Position numbers and translations under genes: made by a program | Notes under the pieces: model-generated | What the model was told of the DNA's origin: nothing | Databases searched by the model: none | The model's input: only the letters and a program-made list of their open reading frames with translations | Shown here: piece after piece, positions 16,511 through 26,259 of the stretch | How the letters are laid out: every line of letters starts with the position of its first letter | Position numbering within the stretch: the stretch's first letter is position 1 | DNA from: Rebecca billardiae RCC1528 | Taxonomy: Eukaryota > Protista > Haptophyta | Length of the DNA: 64,000 nt | Direction of reading: 5' to 3' | Assembly: GCA_965240325.2 (NCBI GenBank) | Contig: OZ251254.1 | Coordinates: forward strand, 744,001 to 808,000

Positions 16511-17446
16511 ATGGCCGCGGCCGTCGTCGAGATCGGATCGGACGCGGCGGCGCGCGGCGCGGAGAGCACGTTCGAGCCGGACGAGGCGCGGCTGGACGAG
16601 GCGCTCGCCGCCTCGCGCGCCGACTACGCCATCCTGTGGACGCTCCGTGTCGCGCGCGCAGAGGACGAGCGGGACGTGCTCGTGTGCGGCGCGTACCACT
16701 CGATCGACGGCGTGCTGATGGAGGGCTCGAGCACGATGTCGTTCGGGCCGGGCAAGGACATCGTCGGGCGCGTGTGGAGCACGGGAGAGCCCTTCTTCGC
16801 GCCCGCCGTCAGCGCGCTCGACGAGGTGCGCTTCTCGCGCAAGCAGCTCGCCATGTTCGAGCGCGTCCGCTCGATCGCCACGTTCAAGTTTGCCAACGGC
16901 GTGCTCGAGCTCGGGTGCAAGAAGGGCTGGGCGGAGCCGCCGTTCATCGACTACGCGGCGCTCGCCGAGCAGCAGTCGGCGCTGCCGCCCAACGCCCAGC
17001 TCACCCTCGACCTCCAGCGGCCGGGCCTGCTCGAGCGCGTGATGGCCGAGAGCGGCGGGCAGTACGCCATCTTCTACCTCTTCTTCGAGGTGGTGCAGGA
17101 GCTCAAGTGCCGGCTGTACGCGTCGGAGGACGGGCGGCTGATGAAGGAGAGCCGCACGTTCCCGTTCACCGTGGGCATGGGCGCGATCGGCAAGGCGTGG
17201 GAGGACAAGGCCTCCGTCTTCATCCCGGACGCGTGCGCGACCGACCCGCGCCGCTTCCTGCGGCAGCCGCTCGCTGAGGTGTACGCCGTGCACTCGATTG
17301 CGCTCATGTGCTTCAAGAACGGGATCCTCGAGTTCGGCACGCGCGAGCGCTGGAGCGCCGCGCCCGAGCTGCCGCTCGACGTGCTGCGCGCGCTCAGCGT
17401 CGAGCACGGCGGCGGCGGCGGCAGCCCGGACCGCGCCGACACATGA
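16511..17446 (+). CDS. Tandem GAF-like domain protein (bHLH-MYC N-terminal / NLP-GAF-like repeats)
   Basis: Two homologous ~130-aa repeats: DYAILW...SF.PGKDIVGRVW...F.RKQLA...SIA...NGVLELG and QYAIFY...F.VGMGAIGKAW...FLRQPLA...SIA...NGILEFG; strong codon bias. Confidence 0.75.
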   Translation: MAAAVVEIGSDAAARGAESTFEPDEARLDEALAASRADYAILWTLRVARAEDERDVLVCGAYHSIDGVLMEGSSTMSFGPGKDIVGRVWSTGEPFFAPAVSALDEVRFSRKQLAMFERVRSIATFKFANGVLELGCKKGWAEPPFIDYAALAEQQSALPPNAQLTLDLQRPGLLERVMAESGGQYAIFYLFFEVVQELKCRLYASEDGRLMKESRTFPFTVGMGAIGKAWEDKASVFIPDACATDPRRFLRQPLAEVYAVHSIALMCFKNGILEFGTRERWSAAPELPLDVLRALSVEHGGGGGSPDRADT

Positions 17447-18188: not shown

Positions 18189-21100
18189 ATGGGCCGGCAA
18201 TCCGGCCGCGTGCAGCCGGAGGTTGCGAGTCGTGGCGATAGCAGCGCGGCTGGCCGCGCCCCCAGCTCCGCCGGCACCGCCGCCGGGTCGAGCGGCGCGC
18301 GCGCGACGGCCGAGAGCGACACGTCGGCCGCGCGGACGCGTGCCGAGCGTGCGCCGGGCGGCGGCGTCCTCTCCATGCTCGGGGCGCGCATGCGACCCAC
18401 TCGACGACGCTCGACCGGCCCGGAGGGCTTCTTCATCGTCACCGACCCCGGGCCGGACCCCGACGACATCAAGGGTGCGCGCGGCGCTCGGCCGCGCAGC
18501 AGCCGCCGGCAGCCCTCGGCTGCCGCTGCTGCTGCGGCGGACTGCGCGCGTGTCCACTCGCGTGGCGTGCGCGCAACCTTCCCACCCAACGCCCACCCCC
18601 GCCCGCCGCCCCCCCCACCCGCGCGTGCGCCCCCCAGCCCTGCTGATCGCCGCCATTCTGCACCGGCAGCGGCAGATTCAGCTGCTCGGCGTCGTGGCCA
18701 ACGGTGCGCGCGCACAGCCGCACACGGGAGGGGGGGGGGGGTGCGTGGGTGGGCGTGGCCCGGGCGTGGCGGCGCCGCTGACGCGCTCGGCTCGCCTCGC
18801 GCGCGGCGTGTGCACGCGCCATGCAGGCGGTCAGCAGGCGCCGATGCGCGCGCGGCTTGCGCGTTGCATCCTCGACCACGTCGGGGAGGCGGACGTGCCC
18901 GTGGCGGTGGGCAGCGCGGGACAGCCGTACAGCGCACAGGCGCACGAGTACAGGTGCGTGTGCGCGCGTGTGCGCCGCCGCTGCGTGCGTGCGTGCGTGC
19001 GAGCGCGTGCGCGCGCGCGGCCCCTCCCCTGTGTCTGTCTGCGCAAAGGCGCAGGCCCGGGGCACGCCCTTGCCTGCGCGCGCGGCGGCCCTTGCCTGCG
19101 CGCGCGGCGCCGAGCGCTGACGGAGCGCGCCCCGCCGCGTGCCCCGCGCACCGCGCGCAGCATCGCCGGCTTCGACGCCGTCTCGGACGCGCGGCTGCTC
19201 CCCGACGGCTCCGCGCTGCTCGCCCGCTGCCTCCGCGCCGCGGGCCCCAAGTCTGTCACCGTCGTGTGTATCTCGTCGATGCGAGATCTGGCGGACGTGA
19301 TGACCCAGGTGGGGAGCTGGCTGGCTGGCGCGCGCGCGCGTGCTGGCGGGGGAGGGGCGTGCGCGCGCGAGGCGGGGTGCGGTTGGTCGTGCGGTGCGGC
19401 GCGGCATGCCCCGCGGCTGCGCAAGCGCTCACCACGCGCGCGCGCGCTGCCGTGCGCGCCGCCCCGCCCCGCCACGCGCCGCCCCGCGCCGCCGCGCGCC
19501 GCCCCGCCCCGCCCCGCGCCGCCCCGCGCCGCCCCGCCTCGCCGCCGGCCCCGCTACTTGCGCGCTCGCCCCCCGCAGGAGGCCTCGCTCGTGCTGGAGA
19601 AGGTCCGGCTGGTCGCGGTGCAGGGCGGGCTGGAGCCGGACCCCTCGAGGCCGTCCGGGTACCGCGCGGACTCGTCCGTCAACAACGGTGCGGCTGCGGG
19701 GGTGCGGCTGCGGGGGTGCGGCTGCGGGGGTGCGGCTGCGGGGGTGCGGCTGCGGGGGTGCGGCTGCGGGGGTGCGGCTGCGGGGGTGCGGCTGCGGGGG
19801 TGCGGCTGCGGGGGTGCGGCTGCGGGGGTGCGGCTGCGGGGGTGCGGCTGCGGGGGTGCGGCTGCGGGGGTGCGGCTGCGGGGGTGCGGCTGCGGGGGTG
19901 CGGCTGCGGGGGTGCGGCTGCGGGGGTGCGGCTGCGGGGGTGCGGCTGCGGGGGTGCGGCTGCGGGGGTGCGGCTGCGGGGGTGCGGCTGCGGGGGTGCG
20001 GCTGCGGGGGTGCGGCTGCGGGGGTGCGGCTGCGGGGGTGCGGCTGCGGGGGTGCGGCTGCGGGGGTGCGGCTGCGGGGGTGCGCCCGGCCCGCGGCTCA
20101 TCCGCCCTGCGCCCCGCCCTTGCGCGTGCCGTGCACACACCCGCGCCCGCACGCACGCCAGGCTTCGACCTCGCAGCGGCTGAGCTGGTGTACAGCTTCT
20201 GCTTCGAGCGGGGCGTGCCCATGACCGTTACTTCCCGTTACGCGGTGCCGCTGCTGCCGATGCAGGTGCGCGCGGGCGAGGCGGCGGCGCAGCCAGCGCG
20301 CGCCCGCCCGCTCGGCGCGCTCGCCCCGCGCCCACCGCACCTCGCCCCGCCGCCGCCCCCTCCGCGCCGGCGCGGTGCGCGCGCGCAGCTCGCCGCCTCG
20401 TTTGCCGAGCGCACGCGCTGCCCCGTGATGGCCTACCTGGCGACGGCGCAGTTCCTGGGGCTGGAGGGGCTGTGGCTGAAGCTGTGCGAGGGCAAGCTGC
20501 CCGCGCGCTGCACCAAGGGGTGGTACTTTGAGACCTTCTGCGGCGTGGGCGCGGCCGAGTTTGAGAAGCGCGGCCTCGGCGGCCAGCTGGGGCCTCACAC
20601 GCGCATCAGGCAGCACCTCAACGGGTGCGGAGCGCTGCGTGTGCGAGCGTGCGCTGTGTGCGCGCGTGTGTGCGTATGTGTGTGCGCGCGTGTGTGCGTA
20701 TGCGTGTGCGCGCGTGTGTGCGTATGTGTGTGCGCGCGCGCGCGTGTGTTCCGCGGCAGCAGCGCGCCCGCTCATCACGCGCCGCCGCCCGCGCGCGCGC
20801 CGCCCCCTGCCCGCAGCTTTGTCAAGCCGTACGACGTGGTCGCGCTGATGACGGCGCTGCCGCTCACGCGGCACGCGCTGCTGCCGCCGGCCGCGCCGTG
20901 CCGCGTGCAGGTGAACGGCGTGTCGCACGCGCTGCTGCTCTCGGCCGCGCACGGCGTGGACGCGGCCGTGGTCGTGAAGCTGCTGCGCGACACTTACCAC
21001 GAGGTGGTGCTGGCGACGCACGCGGGCGGGGACGTGACGGGCGAGGGCGGCGGCGCGGAAGGCGGCGGGCTGCCGCGGCGCGCGTCTGTGCGTGCGGCCG

Positions 21101-23790
21101 TCGCGGACGGCGAGCGCGGCGGCGCGCACGCGGCCGCGTGGCGAGGCGGCGGCGGCGCGGCGGGCGCGGCGCGGCGGCGCGGCGGCGGCGCGAGCGCGCG
21201 CCGCCTCTCGCGCGCGCTCGGCGGCGGCGGCGAGCTGAGCGCGCGGCCGCGCGCCGCGGCCGAGGGCGGCGGCGGCGGCCGCGGCCGCGGCGGCGGCGCG
21301 CCCGCCGCCCCGGCCAAGCCGGGGGCCTCCGCCGCCGCCGCCGCCGCCGCCTCCGCCGCCGCCGCCTCGCGAGCGTCCACCGCCGCGGCCGAGCAGCGGC
21401 TGGAGCGGCTGCGCGACACTTCGGTCTTCTCCGACCCCGCGCTGCTCTTCGCCGCACAGCAGCAGCGGCGGCGGGGACAGGCTGACGAGGCGGCGGGCGG
21501 CGCGGCGGGCGCGGGCGGCGGCGGTGCGGCGGGCGGCGGCGGTGCGGGCGCGGCCGGGGCGGCGGGCGGCGGTGGCGGCGGCGGCGCCGACGCGCGCCAC
21601 CGCCTCAGCCTCGACGGCGCGGTCGCGCTCGACGGCGCGGCGCTCGCGGCCGCGCTCGCCGCGGCGGAGGGCGAGAGCCGCCCCTCGCCGCCGCCTCTCT
21701 CGCCCTTCCGCTCGCGCAGCGCGTCGCTGAGCGCACGCGGCGGCGGGCGGCGGCCGAGCGGCGCGGGCGCGCTGTCGCGCAGCCCGTTTGGCGGCTCGCG
21801 CCGATTCCGCAGCGAGAGCGCCGAGCTGCCGCCCTCCGCCGCCGCGTGCGCCGCGTGCGCGGAGCCGCCCGGCCGCGCGCCCCCGTTCGCGCCCGCGCGC
21901 GCCGCGCCGCCGCCCACCGTGGGCTCAGAGCTCACTCCAGACGAGACGTTGTTCCTGCTGCGGCGCGCGCTCGGCGACGCGCACCGGCGGCACGCCAAGA
22001 CGACGATCCCGCTCGCGCGCGCGGGCACGGCGCTGCTGCTGCTCGGCGCGTGCGCCGCGGCGGCGGACGGCTTTGGCACGGAGGCCGCGCTGCTGCGCGC
22101 CGCACCCGCCGCCGACGCCGCCGACGCCGCCGCCGACGCCCCGACGGCGGCGCAGCTGCGCGCGCTCGGCGCGGCGGCGCTCGCGCTGCGAGTGCGTCTG
22201 TGCGCGTGGGCGGTCGCGCGGCTGCTCGGCGTGGGCACCGCCGTGGCCGCGCTGCACCCCACCGAGGCGCACGTGGGCGCGACGCGCGCGCTCGGCGGCG
22301 CGCTGTGCTGCGCGCTCTGCCTCGCGTGCGCGCGCGCCGCGGCGCTCGCGCTGCGCGCGGCGGCGTGCGGCCGCGCGGCGGCGGGCGGCGGCGGCGCGCG
22401 CGCCGAGCAGCGCGCGCGCGGCTGGGCGGGCGGCGCCGAGGGCCCGGCGGCCGCGCAGTGCGTGCTGCTGCCGCTGCCCGGCGGCGCGGACGGCGCGGCC
22501 GCCTCGCTCGGCGTCGAGTGCGCGTGGCTGTGCGCGTGCGCAGCGCTGCTCTGCGCGCTCGGCCTCGGCGGCGCGGCGCTGCGCGCGCGCCCGCCACGCG
22601 ACCTCAGCCGGCGCCGGCTCGACGGCGCGTGCGCGGTGGCGGGGCTGTGGGCGCTGGGCGTGGCGGCGCGCGAGGGCGCGCTGCTGCTCGCCGCGCCGCG
22701 CGCCGCGCAGCTCGACGCCGGCGGCGGCGCGCACGTGGCCGCGCTCGGCGGCGCGCTCCTTGGCCTGCGCGCCCTCGCGGCCGTGCTCGGCGTGAGCGTG
22801 GGCGTGTGCGCGCTGCGCGGCCGCGCGCGCGCGCGGCTGCAGTCTCGCGTCGCGGGCGCTCTCTCGTCGGGCGGCCGTCTCGCCTCGCTCGCGCCCCTGC
22901 TCGGCTTCGGCACCGCGCACGAGCTCGACCCCGCGGAGGTGTGCGCGTGCGCGGAGGGCGGCCTGCAGAGCCTGCTGCTGGAGCGCCGGGCCTTCTCGAG
23001 CGCGCCCGCGGCGGCGGCGGCGGAGGCGGAGGCGGAGGCGGAGGCGGGGCTCGGCGCGAGCGTCGCGCGCGCCGCCGCGCGCAGCGCCGCCGCGCCCTCG
23101 CCGCGCGCCGCCGCCGCCGCGCCCGGCCAGCGCGCGCGCCGCCCAGCACCCTTCTCCTTGTTCAGGCCGCCGCCGCCAGGCTCAGAGGCGGCGGCGGCGG
23201 CGGCGGAGGATGCAGCGGCGCGGCACGCCGCGGCGCTCGGCGGCTGCGCGCACGCCGCGCCCTTCTCGCTCTGCGCCGGCAGCGCCTCTGCCTCCTTCAG
23301 CGCCAAGTGCGGCGCCGCGCTCGCGCTGGGCGCAGTGCTCGGCCGGCGCGGCGGCGCGGAGGGCGGGCGCGCGCCGCGCCGCCACTCCGATCCGCGCGGC
23401 ACCGGCGGGGGCGCGGGGGCGGGGGGCGGCGCGGGGGGCGGCGGCGGCCTCGGCGCGATGCCGCCCGGCACAGCCCTCGCGCTCGGCGGCGGCGGGCGGC
23501 ACGGCTCGCCCCGCCGCTGCTCCGCGCCGCCGCAGCGCGCGGGCGGCGGCGGCGGCTGCGGCGCCGAGCTCGGCGGCGGCGGCGGGTGCGGGTGCGGCGG
23601 CGCGTGCGGTGGTGGGTGCGCGCACCCACTAGCCGACCTGTCGCTTCTGTCGGAGGAGGGGGCGGAGGAGGGGGCGGAGGAGGGGGCGGCCGAGCTGCCC
23701 GCGCAGGGCGGAGGCGCGGCGGACGTCGACGCCGCCTCCGCCCTCGACGAGTGGAGCGTGCCGGCCTCGCCGCAGCCCGCGGACGGCGGC

Positions 23791-23821
<31 letters not shown>

Positions 23822-25540
23822 CGCGGCGCGGCCGCCGCGCCGTTCAACTCGCCCGTCGCCGCGTCGCGGCTGCTGCGCGGCGCGGTGCACGCGCGCTTCG
23901 AGCGGCGCGCGCGCTCACTCGTCGACTGGCGCGCGGCCGAGGGCGCGGAGAGCGCGCCCACGTCCCCCGGGCCGCTCGACGACGGAGCGTGCGCCGCGGG
24001 CGTTCACGCGCTGCGCGGCCGCGGCGGCGGCGTTGGCGGCGGCGGCGGCGCGTGCGGCGGCGCGCGCTTTGGCGCGGTGCGCGCGCTGTCGGGGCTCGCG
24101 CCGCCGCCGCCGCCGCCCGCGGACGGCGCGGCGTCCGCGCCCGCCTCGCCCGCGGGCGAGCGCGGCAAGCAGGAGCGCCGGGAGTCCTTCCGGGCGGCCT
24201 CGCCCAAGGGCGGTACCTCGCCGCACGCGGCGGGCGCGGACGCGGCCGCGGCGGGCGGCGGCGGCGGCGGCGGGTGCGGGCGCGCGGGCAGCCGCTCTGG
24301 CGTGCTGATGCGCCGCTTCCGCCAGTCGTTCAACTCGACGCTCGGCGCGGCGACGGGCCGGCTGCGCCGCGCGCCGAGGCCGTCCGAGGAAGGCAGCGCC
24401 GCCGACTCGGAGGAGGCGGAGGGCTGGGCGGCCGCGCAGCAGCAGCTCGCGGCCGCGCAGCAGGCGGCGGCCGAGGCGGAGGCGGAGCGGCGCGCGGCGC
24501 TGCGGCGCATCGACTTTTACGTCGTGCACTCGAGGGGGGACGACGAGGGGGCGAAGCACCGCGCGCTGGAGCGCTGGGCGGCGGCGTGGGCGGCGGAGCA
24601 CGGCCGGCCGCCGCGCGTCTGGCTCGACTCGCGCTGCCAGCCGCCCGACGCGCCGCTGCGCACACAGCTGGCACACATGCCCACGCACGTCGGCCGCGCG
24701 CGCTCGCTGCTGCTGCTGCTCGGACCGACGCTGGCGGACCGGCTGTGGGCGGTGGCCGAGCTGTACGTGTGGTCGGTGCTCGGCGGCGCGGCGGCGGACG
24801 TGCACGTGCTCCTCGTCGCGCAGGGGCCGGCGCAGCGCCGCCTCGCCCTCGCGGCCATCGACACCTTCCACGTCATGTACGCTTCGCTCGGCGTGGCCGG
24901 CGCGGCCGCGGCGGCGAGCGCGCTCCGCGTCGCCGACCCGAGCGGCGCGAGCCTGTCCGCGCAGCGGATGGTGGCGACGGCGTCCGCCGCGGCGATGCTG
25001 GCGCGACGGTCGGTGGCGCGCGGCGGGGGCGGCGGCGCGCGCGCGGCGCGCGGCAGCTCGGCAGACGCGGACGCGGACTCCGACTCCGACTCCGACGCGG
25101 ACGCGGGCGCGGGCGCGGACGCGCTCGAGAGCGGAGCGGCGCCGCGTGCCTCCCGCTGCTCCGCCGCCGCGTCCACGCGCGCCTCGGCCGCCGACGACGA
25201 GAGCGGCGCCGACGGCGGCGCCCGTCGCGGCGGTCTGCGCGCCGCGTGCGCGCCGCTCGGCTGCCGGTGGCGCTGGGGGGCCGGCTGGGGGCCGTCCGCC
25301 TGGATGGCGGAGCGGCGCTCGCGCGCGTCCGCGCAGCGCGCGGCGCTCGCGGAGGAGGCGGAGGCGCACGAGCGCATCGTGCACATGGTCGAGCTCGCGC
25401 AGGTCTCGTGCTTCAACGAGGCGGTGCGCGCGTACATGCCGCTCGCCCGGGAGGCGGCCGAGCGCGCGGAGGCGGCGGAGGCGGCGGCGGAGGCGGAGGC
25501 GGAGGCGGCGGACGATGGGCCCGCCAAGACGCTGCTCTGA
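18189..25540 (+). CDS. Nucleoside-hydrolase-fold (XopQ/HopQ1-like) + about 6 TM + TIR-like fusion protein; 8 exons, one +1 frame shift near 23820
   Basis: Exons 18189-18474, 18638-18703, 18827-18953, 19161-19308, 19579-19687, 20162-20265, 20389-20624, 20817 onward splice in frame to give IVTDPGPDPDDIKALL...VVANGG...VPVAVG...VQGG...NNGFD...KPYDVVAL. Hydrophobic segments at 22020-22820. IDFYVVHS...VWLD...LLLLLGPTL.DRLWAVAEL at 24500-24790 (next frame). Confidence 0.78.
19687..20083 (+). repeat. 14-bp minisatellite (GGTGCGGCTGCGGG) x about 28, inside intron 5
   Basis: Perfect tandem array starting exactly at the splice donor. Confidence 0.95.
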
Positions 25541-25633: not shown

Positions 25634-25717
25634 CTCTCTCTCTCGATCTCTCTCTCTCTCTCTCTCTCTCCCTCTCTCTCTCGATCTCTCTCTCTGTCTC
25701 TCTCTCTCTCTCTCTCT
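25634..25717. repeat. (CT)n microsatellite, followed by AT-rich tracts to about 25990
   Basis: Near-pure CT run. Confidence 0.9.
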
Positions 25718-26259
25718 AAGTCTAGCCGTCTCCGTACGGTCTCAGGCGGCTCCGTCAGGCGTCACACTCTCGTCTGGCTAGCTATAATAAATATAATATA
25801 TATATGAGGGGGGGGGGGACGACGGCGAGGAGCGCTGATCCTGGCGGTGTTTGTCTCTGCTGCTCGATCTGCTGCTACAGCTTGCTGACTCTGACGCCTG
25901 CCCGTTGCATACCACGTCGTTAATATATCGATTATAATATATAATATATATATATATTATAATATATATATTATATAATAATAATAATTATCGGCGGGGC
26001 GCACTCTTGACACGACCGCCACTAGCTGATATGCTACTCGACTACTCACGCGCGAGCCTGATGCGGCCGCCGGATGTTGCGGGATGAGCCGGCTAGGTCT
26101 CGTCACGACCGCGGCGAGCCTCGCTGGCGCTGCGGCGTCGGACCGTCCCGGGTGCCGCGCTCGGCGCGCCGATGCTGCTGACAGTATGATGACTCATCGC
26201 GGGAGGAAGTCAGCTGTGAGCTGGGGAACCTGCTGGCGGAAGGGTGAAGCTGAGCGCGG

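Follow-up and report, generated by a model that had tools for sequence, protein, structure and literature searches.

Does a single algal polypeptide join the maker of a nucleotide signal to the enzyme that removes it? The question arises from a gene of the haptophyte Rebecca billardiae RCC1528, on a 64,000-nucleotide stretch of contig OZ251254.1 (assembly GCA_965240325.2, positions 744,001 to 808,000) that we analysed as a whole and hereafter call the window; coordinates are those of the window. A sequence-only reading of the locus had proposed a XopQ/HopQ1-type nucleoside hydrolase fused, through a multi-pass membrane domain, to a TIR-like domain. We find that positions 18375-25540, on the + strand like all coding features described here, are a real, intron-rich gene of a pavlovophyte-type haptophyte, and that its three-part architecture recurs in Pavlovophyceae. 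In the reading that we favour, to which we give a probability of roughly one half, the product would be a membrane protein in which a TIR-like maker and a XopQ-type eraser of an ADP-ribose (ADPR)-type signal act in cis, both in the cytosol.

Gene structure and coding evidence

The G+C content of the region is 78-85%, so that long open reading frames (ORFs) are uninformative on their own. A three-frame reading of the + strand locates every motif quoted in the sequence-only reading, and the pieces of the window align in order, without coverage gaps, to an uninterrupted ORF of Diacronema lutheri (L002:9380-10249); the motifs are real, in exons collinear with that ORF. D. lutheri is the closest relative of the window, with 70-78% nucleotide identity in conserved stretches, and tblastn of the exons against its ORF gives E values of 4e-13, 2.5e-11 and 4.7e-41. 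Eight exons are separated by seven GT-AG introns, all of the form GTG(C/G)G...CAG and all keeping the codon phase; D. lutheri has just the last of the seven. In the predicted frames, G+C at third codon positions stays at 0.93-1.0 throughout. Homology, splice phases and codon periodicity together rule out chance ORFs in G+C-rich DNA. Between the window and the D. lutheri locus, there is no synteny apart from the gene itself.

The gene runs from a likely start codon at 18375 to a TGA stop codon at 25538-25540, with one frame change within its second linker; the start proposed earlier, 18189, lies upstream of this start codon. Exon A (18375-18474) holds the likely start codon and, at 18441-18467 in frame 0, the Asp cluster TDPGPDPDD. 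Exons B (18638-18703), C (18827-18953) and D (19161-19308) continue the hydrolase domain and were placed by collinearity with D. lutheri and by their splice sites. Exon E (19579-19687) terminates in ..SSVNN and the first base of a Gly codon, which exon F (20162-20265) completes to NNG before continuing with FD; intron 5 (19688-20161), mainly a perfect 14-base tandem repeat, lies between them. Exon G (20389-20624) carries more of the hydrolase domain, and the 5′ part of the last exon (20817-21030) carries its end. The rest of the last exon encodes a low-complexity linker 1, rich in Gly, Ala and Arg (21031-21945), the membrane domain (21946-22815), a conserved post-membrane segment consisting of an LAPLLGFG motif and the helices after it (22888-22995), a low-complexity linker 2 (22996-24460) and the C-terminal domain.

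Recurrence in relatives

Protein searches retrieved D. lutheri KFE25_006283 (P0001) and P0002, a protein of 1,506 residues from a 4.6-kb assembled contig (L001, Logan SRR21130513). The D. lutheri gene model begins at an internal Met; a whole hydrolase domain closely precedes it, in frame but outside the annotation (L002:9380-10249, JAGTXO010000002.1), and the database protein therefore conceals the architecture. Further relatives include two D. lutheri paralogues and one protein of Pavlovales sp. CCMP2436. All relatives are labelled hypothetical.

The membrane and C-terminal parts are present in all 30 long relatives aligned, and a near-complete hydrolase domain in about 18 of them. Transcriptome ORFs from MMETSP that are marked complete carry the full architecture (P0019, and P0153/P0160 of Pavlova gyrans), which establishes hydrolase, membrane and TIR-like parts as one protein in relatives. 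The same domain order, which the sequence-only reading had suggested looking for among haptophyte proteins, was thus found in Pavlovophyceae. Its expectation of a single transcript is borne out by these complete ORFs of relatives, and is left incomplete by the frame change in the copy in the window.

A XopQ-type hydrolase domain

The window's exons were searched separately, and natural full-length relatives represent the joined protein in searches and in folding. Judged by sequence and by the fold of these relatives, the N-terminal domain is a nucleoside hydrolase of the XopQ/HopQ1 type, the group of the HopQ1-like proteins (HLPs). Its Asp cluster is the DxxxDxDD variant, not the canonical DxDxxxDD, and the alignment of a relative places it on the cluster of XopQ. 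The ..NN/G FD motif is interrupted by the intron at 19687/20162, and the closing motif is KPYD (20821-20835), where the YD of a relative aligns to the YD of XopQ. In the sequence alignment, the algal Asp cluster, NN..D and YD all superpose on their XopQ counterparts; among the 25 members that have the YD column, Tyr is kept in 21 and Asp in 20.

Collinear relatives pass the PF01156 gathering cut-off of 34.2 bits (D. lutheri, 35.5 bits; P0002, 38.9-43.4; P0007, 48.0), and 16 of 30 relatives match this family at E<=0.01. Among solved structures, those of XopQ (7jlu_B, 4kl0 and 4p5f) match best, at E 8.9e-21 with the D. lutheri protein and 1.8e-32 with P0019, as opposed to E ~1e-3 or no match for canonical hydrolases with the same proteins. 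P0019 and XopQ share 28% identity over ~310 residues. The AlphaFold model of P0019 has a predicted local distance difference test score (pLDDT) above 90 across residues 17-365, and it has matches to over 100 hydrolase chains at E<=1e-3. A fold search with the model returns XopQ at E 1.8e-17, with a template-modelling (TM) score of 0.77 and 28% identity, and canonical enzymes at E 5.4e-8 with 13-17% identity. The earlier assignment to XopQ/HopQ1 hence holds for relatives by both routes, far above the match to canonical enzymes.

All nine key hydrolase residues are intact in the window copy, and the key residues are intact in 12 of the 14 relatives with a whole domain; P0002 and P0007 lack some of the hydrolase Asp residues and keep the fold. 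The conservation of the putative Ca-binding Asp cluster, of NN..D and of YD is as would be expected of an enzyme.

Membrane domain and topology

The membrane domain consists of a juxtamembrane helix followed by six hydrophobic segments (22006-22815). In the P0019 model, six long helices lie between residues 503 and 708, with disordered linkers on either side, and the hydrophobic segments of the window are collinear with them. A hydropathy scan finds five clear segments and one weaker one at 22006-22815 in the window, and between 4 and 7, mostly 5-6, in the relatives. The multi-pass linker that had been read from the sequence is therefore present both in the model of a relative and in the window. 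No known membrane family was matched by the six-helix domain. Several of the hydrophobic helices of the window (22160-22815) contain Arg, which could be functional, as in a pore or a voltage sensor, or could be a by-product of the extreme G+C codon bias.

The hydrolase fold begins ~20 residues past the start codon, leaving no room for a signal peptide. Loops predicted to be cytosolic carry 11.5 Lys and Arg per protein, as opposed to 4.1 in the other loops. Together with the even helix count, these features predict that both soluble domains are cytosolic, in agreement with the topology proposed earlier.

A membrane domain between two soluble domains is a layout typical of receptors, and so brings up a different role for the hydrolase fold: that of a sensor, mainly binding a ribosyl or ADPR-type ligand of host or pathogen origin and gating the TIR-like or the membrane domain, in the manner of the ligand-binding modules of Thoeris effectors. 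The XopQ crystal structure 4p5f holds ADPR in its pocket, as a binding domain would, and the persistence of the fold in the two relatives lacking some Asp-cluster residues fits the same idea. We nevertheless consider a sensor unlikely, given that the Ca-binding cluster, NN..D and YD are intact, as expected of an enzyme, in the window and in most relatives, and that XopQ itself is a fast enzyme (bioRxiv 10.64898/2026.06.15.732069).

A TIR-like C-terminal domain

The TIR-like core (24461-24886) contains strand A with DFYVVHS (24512-24532), a WLD motif (24620-24628), strand C (24704-24727) and the RLWAVAE helix with a conserved Glu (24740-24772). An in-frame low-complexity insert of ~160 codons (24887-25369), absent from relatives, separates the core from conserved C-terminal helices (25370-25537) that, in the model of a relative, pack on it. 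Removal of the insert as an intron was considered and rejected: the sole consensus donor/acceptor pair does not keep the frame, and its use would delete conserved residues.

An exhaustive search with 24461-25537 yields 1,198 cluster representatives at E<=1e-3, and in many of these the domain is C-terminal in proteins of 700-1,300 residues. When proteins were searched within set length limits, the C-terminal ORF gave no match, the relatives being longer or shorter than those limits. The window domain itself matches neither the TIR profiles of Pfam (PF01582 and PF13676, at E<=10) nor HET (PF06985), a family considered TIR-like, in which a Glu is conserved (PMC9153377). Among 71 short relatives, 10 match TIR_2 weakly (best E 0.005) and 8 match HET weakly (best E 0.0019). 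A profile of the relatives, searched against the PDB, finds the TIR domains of TLR15/TLR2 (E 0.012) and SIGIRR, with the Glu aligned.

Modelled from the alignment of its relatives, the window's own C-terminal domain forms alternating strands and helices (pLDDT 89.1; predicted TM score, 0.81). Its top 50 PDB fold matches are nearly all TIR domains, with probabilities of 0.9-1.0, and include RPV1, RUN1, RPP1, Roq1, MAL, AbTir, SARM1 and SPARTA; among viral structures, a TIR/WD40 protein of Tetraselmis virus 1 matches best. As modelled, the domain thus has a TIR-like fold, and by sequence it stands between TIR_2 and HET. Models of defence systems from PADLOC match neither this domain nor P0003 or P0019, and one relative matches ThsB at E 0.054.

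The Glu at the TIR catalytic position is present in the window and kept in 60 of 71 short relatives and 23 of 30 members; together with the intact hydrolase residues, this means that both putative active sites are conserved in the copy studied here. The Glu is lost in P0002 and P0155, so that P0002 lacks it as well as hydrolase Asp residues. Judged by these residues, P0002, P0007 and P0155 may be inactive paralogues with a regulatory role. Across the family, the two active sites were checked for a tendency to be lost together, and none was found.

These comparisons also bear on a second alternative, that the C-terminal domain oligomerises as an adaptor or death domain, like fungal HET or the TIR domains of animal TLRs, with the hydrolase, for which the fusion is no more than a tether to the membrane, acting on some ribosyl substrate unrelated to it. 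HET is matched about as frequently as TIR_2, the best PDB sequence matches are adaptor-type TIRs, and the defence-system models are silent; against an adaptor, the Glu at the catalytic position is retained in most short relatives. The best structural matches, moreover, are NAD-cleaving plant TIRs, and the attached hydrolase is of the sole subfamily with a known activity on a product of TIRs, which makes the adaptor a doubtful account of this protein.

A frame change in the second linker

Between the membrane and C-terminal domains, the coding periodicity of the window shifts frame once, within a triplet-repeat tract of linker 2, without stops. A GT-AG intron that would account for the change was sought; none fits, and there is no room for one. 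At the matching position of the D. lutheri orthologue there is a single exon. This copy could, on that evidence, be a pseudogene or a gene of two products, in which the sense reading stops after the membrane domain and the TIR-like part is untranslated or internally started. Downstream of the change, however, the coding periodicity persists and no conserved residue is missing, making an assembly error in the G+C-rich repeat or a very recent change likelier than an old pseudogene; the TIR-like domain has a frame free of stops, and G+C-rich triplet repeats are places where assembly errors are common. We regard a pseudogene or a divided product as very improbable.

Intron repeats and surroundings of the gene

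The repeat of intron 5 spans 19687-20084 and comprises 28.4 copies of a 14-base unit at 100% identity. It begins exactly at the splice donor, and every unit therefore repeats the donor-like GGTGCGG. Two further introns hold short tandem repeats (20651-20738 and 19454-19554), the first of a TG/CG-rich unit of 24 bases, present 3.5 times, and the second of a CG-rich unit of 10-20 bases. Introns filled with repeats look habitual in this genome.

Right after the stop codon, the G+C content drops sharply, and a (CT)42 microsatellite is followed by an AT-rich repeat (25634-25717 and 25921-25991); this is probably intergenic DNA. Upstream of the gene, a single-exon ORF (16511-17446, + strand) contains two bHLH-MYC_N-type, GAF-like stretches (PF14215, E 5.9e-13).

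Proposed mechanism and significance

XopQ and HopQ1 act on the TIR product 2′ cyclic ADPR (2'cADPR) by hydrolysing its O-glycosidic bond, which gives ADPR and requires two conserved Asp residues (bioRxiv 10.64898/2026.06.15.732069). By analogy, the make-and-erase reading that we prefer would have the TIR-like domain, clustered in the membrane, cleave nicotinamide adenine dinucleotide (NAD+) to an ADPR-type cyclic signal resembling 2'cADPR, and the XopQ-type domain on the same chain hydrolyse that signal, as XopQ does. The membrane domain would anchor and cluster the protein, or might itself be the effector. Were the XopQ-type domain to erase the signal of its own chain, the protein would set a threshold and switch itself off, which hints that algae have a self-limiting switch for immunity or cell death. 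The activity of XopQ on 2'cADPR, reported in the 2026 preprint, strengthens this reading by analogy.

Several observations weigh against it. The copy in the window has one frame change ahead of its C-terminal domain. Pfam matches neither the hydrolase nor the C-terminal domain in the window's exons or long single-frame readings, and single exons, being too short, give nothing significant against the PDB (the best match is XopQ, at E 1.3); the domains of the window are consequently assigned through its 37-60% identity to relatives. The C-terminal domain falls under the curated cut-offs of both TIR_2 and HET, in the window and in the 71 relatives, and its TM-scores to TIR structures are just 0.4-0.5. 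The earlier call of a TIR-like domain is thus upheld by the fold search and the aligned Glu, and falls short at the level of sequence profiles. In about a third of the long relatives, little or nothing of the hydrolase domain is seen, which in at least one of them reflects a truncated gene model. Lastly, the Asp cluster and the Glu have each disappeared independently in some relatives, so the two active sites are not strictly coupled.

Beyond the cis-acting maker and eraser, one may picture a self-resetting TIR unit on one pavlovophyte protein, with a 2'cADPR-type writer, a XopQ-type eraser and a gated six-helix effector, in which case XopQ and HopQ1 would be copies of an ancient host enzyme for terminating signals and not an invention of pathogens. 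We offer this extension tentatively, as somewhat doubtful.

Only in 2026 was the substrate of XopQ recognised to be the TIR product 2'cADPR, and a natural fusion of XopQ-type and TIR-like domains in a free-living alga is independent genomic evidence that both activities belong to one pathway. The fusion suggests cADPR-isomer signalling in haptophytes, and it gives eukaryotic HopQ1-like proteins a candidate function, the termination or thresholding of TIR signals on the host side. The C-terminal domain, for its part, defines a large unnamed TIR/HET-like family (~1,200 cluster representatives) to which current profile libraries are blind. The sequence-only reading knew of no description of the architecture. 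Our literature search found no description of a hydrolase-membrane-TIR fusion, which is new as far as that search shows; algal HLPs themselves were known before, a clade including haptophytes having been reported in 2018, with the hydrolase domain analysed alone (PMC6019455).

Comparison with known systems

The algal hydrolase domain shares with XopQ/HopQ1 and the HLP family the fold, the DxxxDxDD cluster, NN..D and YD. As opposed to those type III effectors of bacterial plant pathogens, the window gene is cellular, algal and intron-bearing, and its product has no secretion leader. It differs from the HLPs of the 2018 study in the six membrane helices and the TIR-like domain joined to its hydrolase, neither of which that study mentions.

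Similar to the NAD+-cleaving TIRs of plant NLRs, SARM1 and Thoeris/SPARTA, the C-terminal domain has a flavodoxin-like order of strands and helices, with a Glu in the helix that follows strand C. Unlike them, it shows 9-18% identity, lies under the Pfam cut-offs and has extra C-terminal helices; it also sits C-terminal to a membrane domain and lacks an NLR, SAM or Argonaute partner. With fungal HET (PF06985), it shares the pattern ..HSW.. / WLD.xC.. / LW..E, and some relatives match that family weakly; in contrast to HET, no member of the algal family reaches the cut-off, the source is not fungal, and no NACHT/WD40 or allorecognition partner is attached.

The closest functional parallels are the known pairs of signal and eraser, plant TIRs against XopQ and Thoeris against phage cADPR-degrading enzymes, each of which sets a TIR-type producer beside a hydrolase of its product. 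In those pairs, the two activities reside in opposing organisms, whereas the putative algal activities are carried by one host polypeptide.

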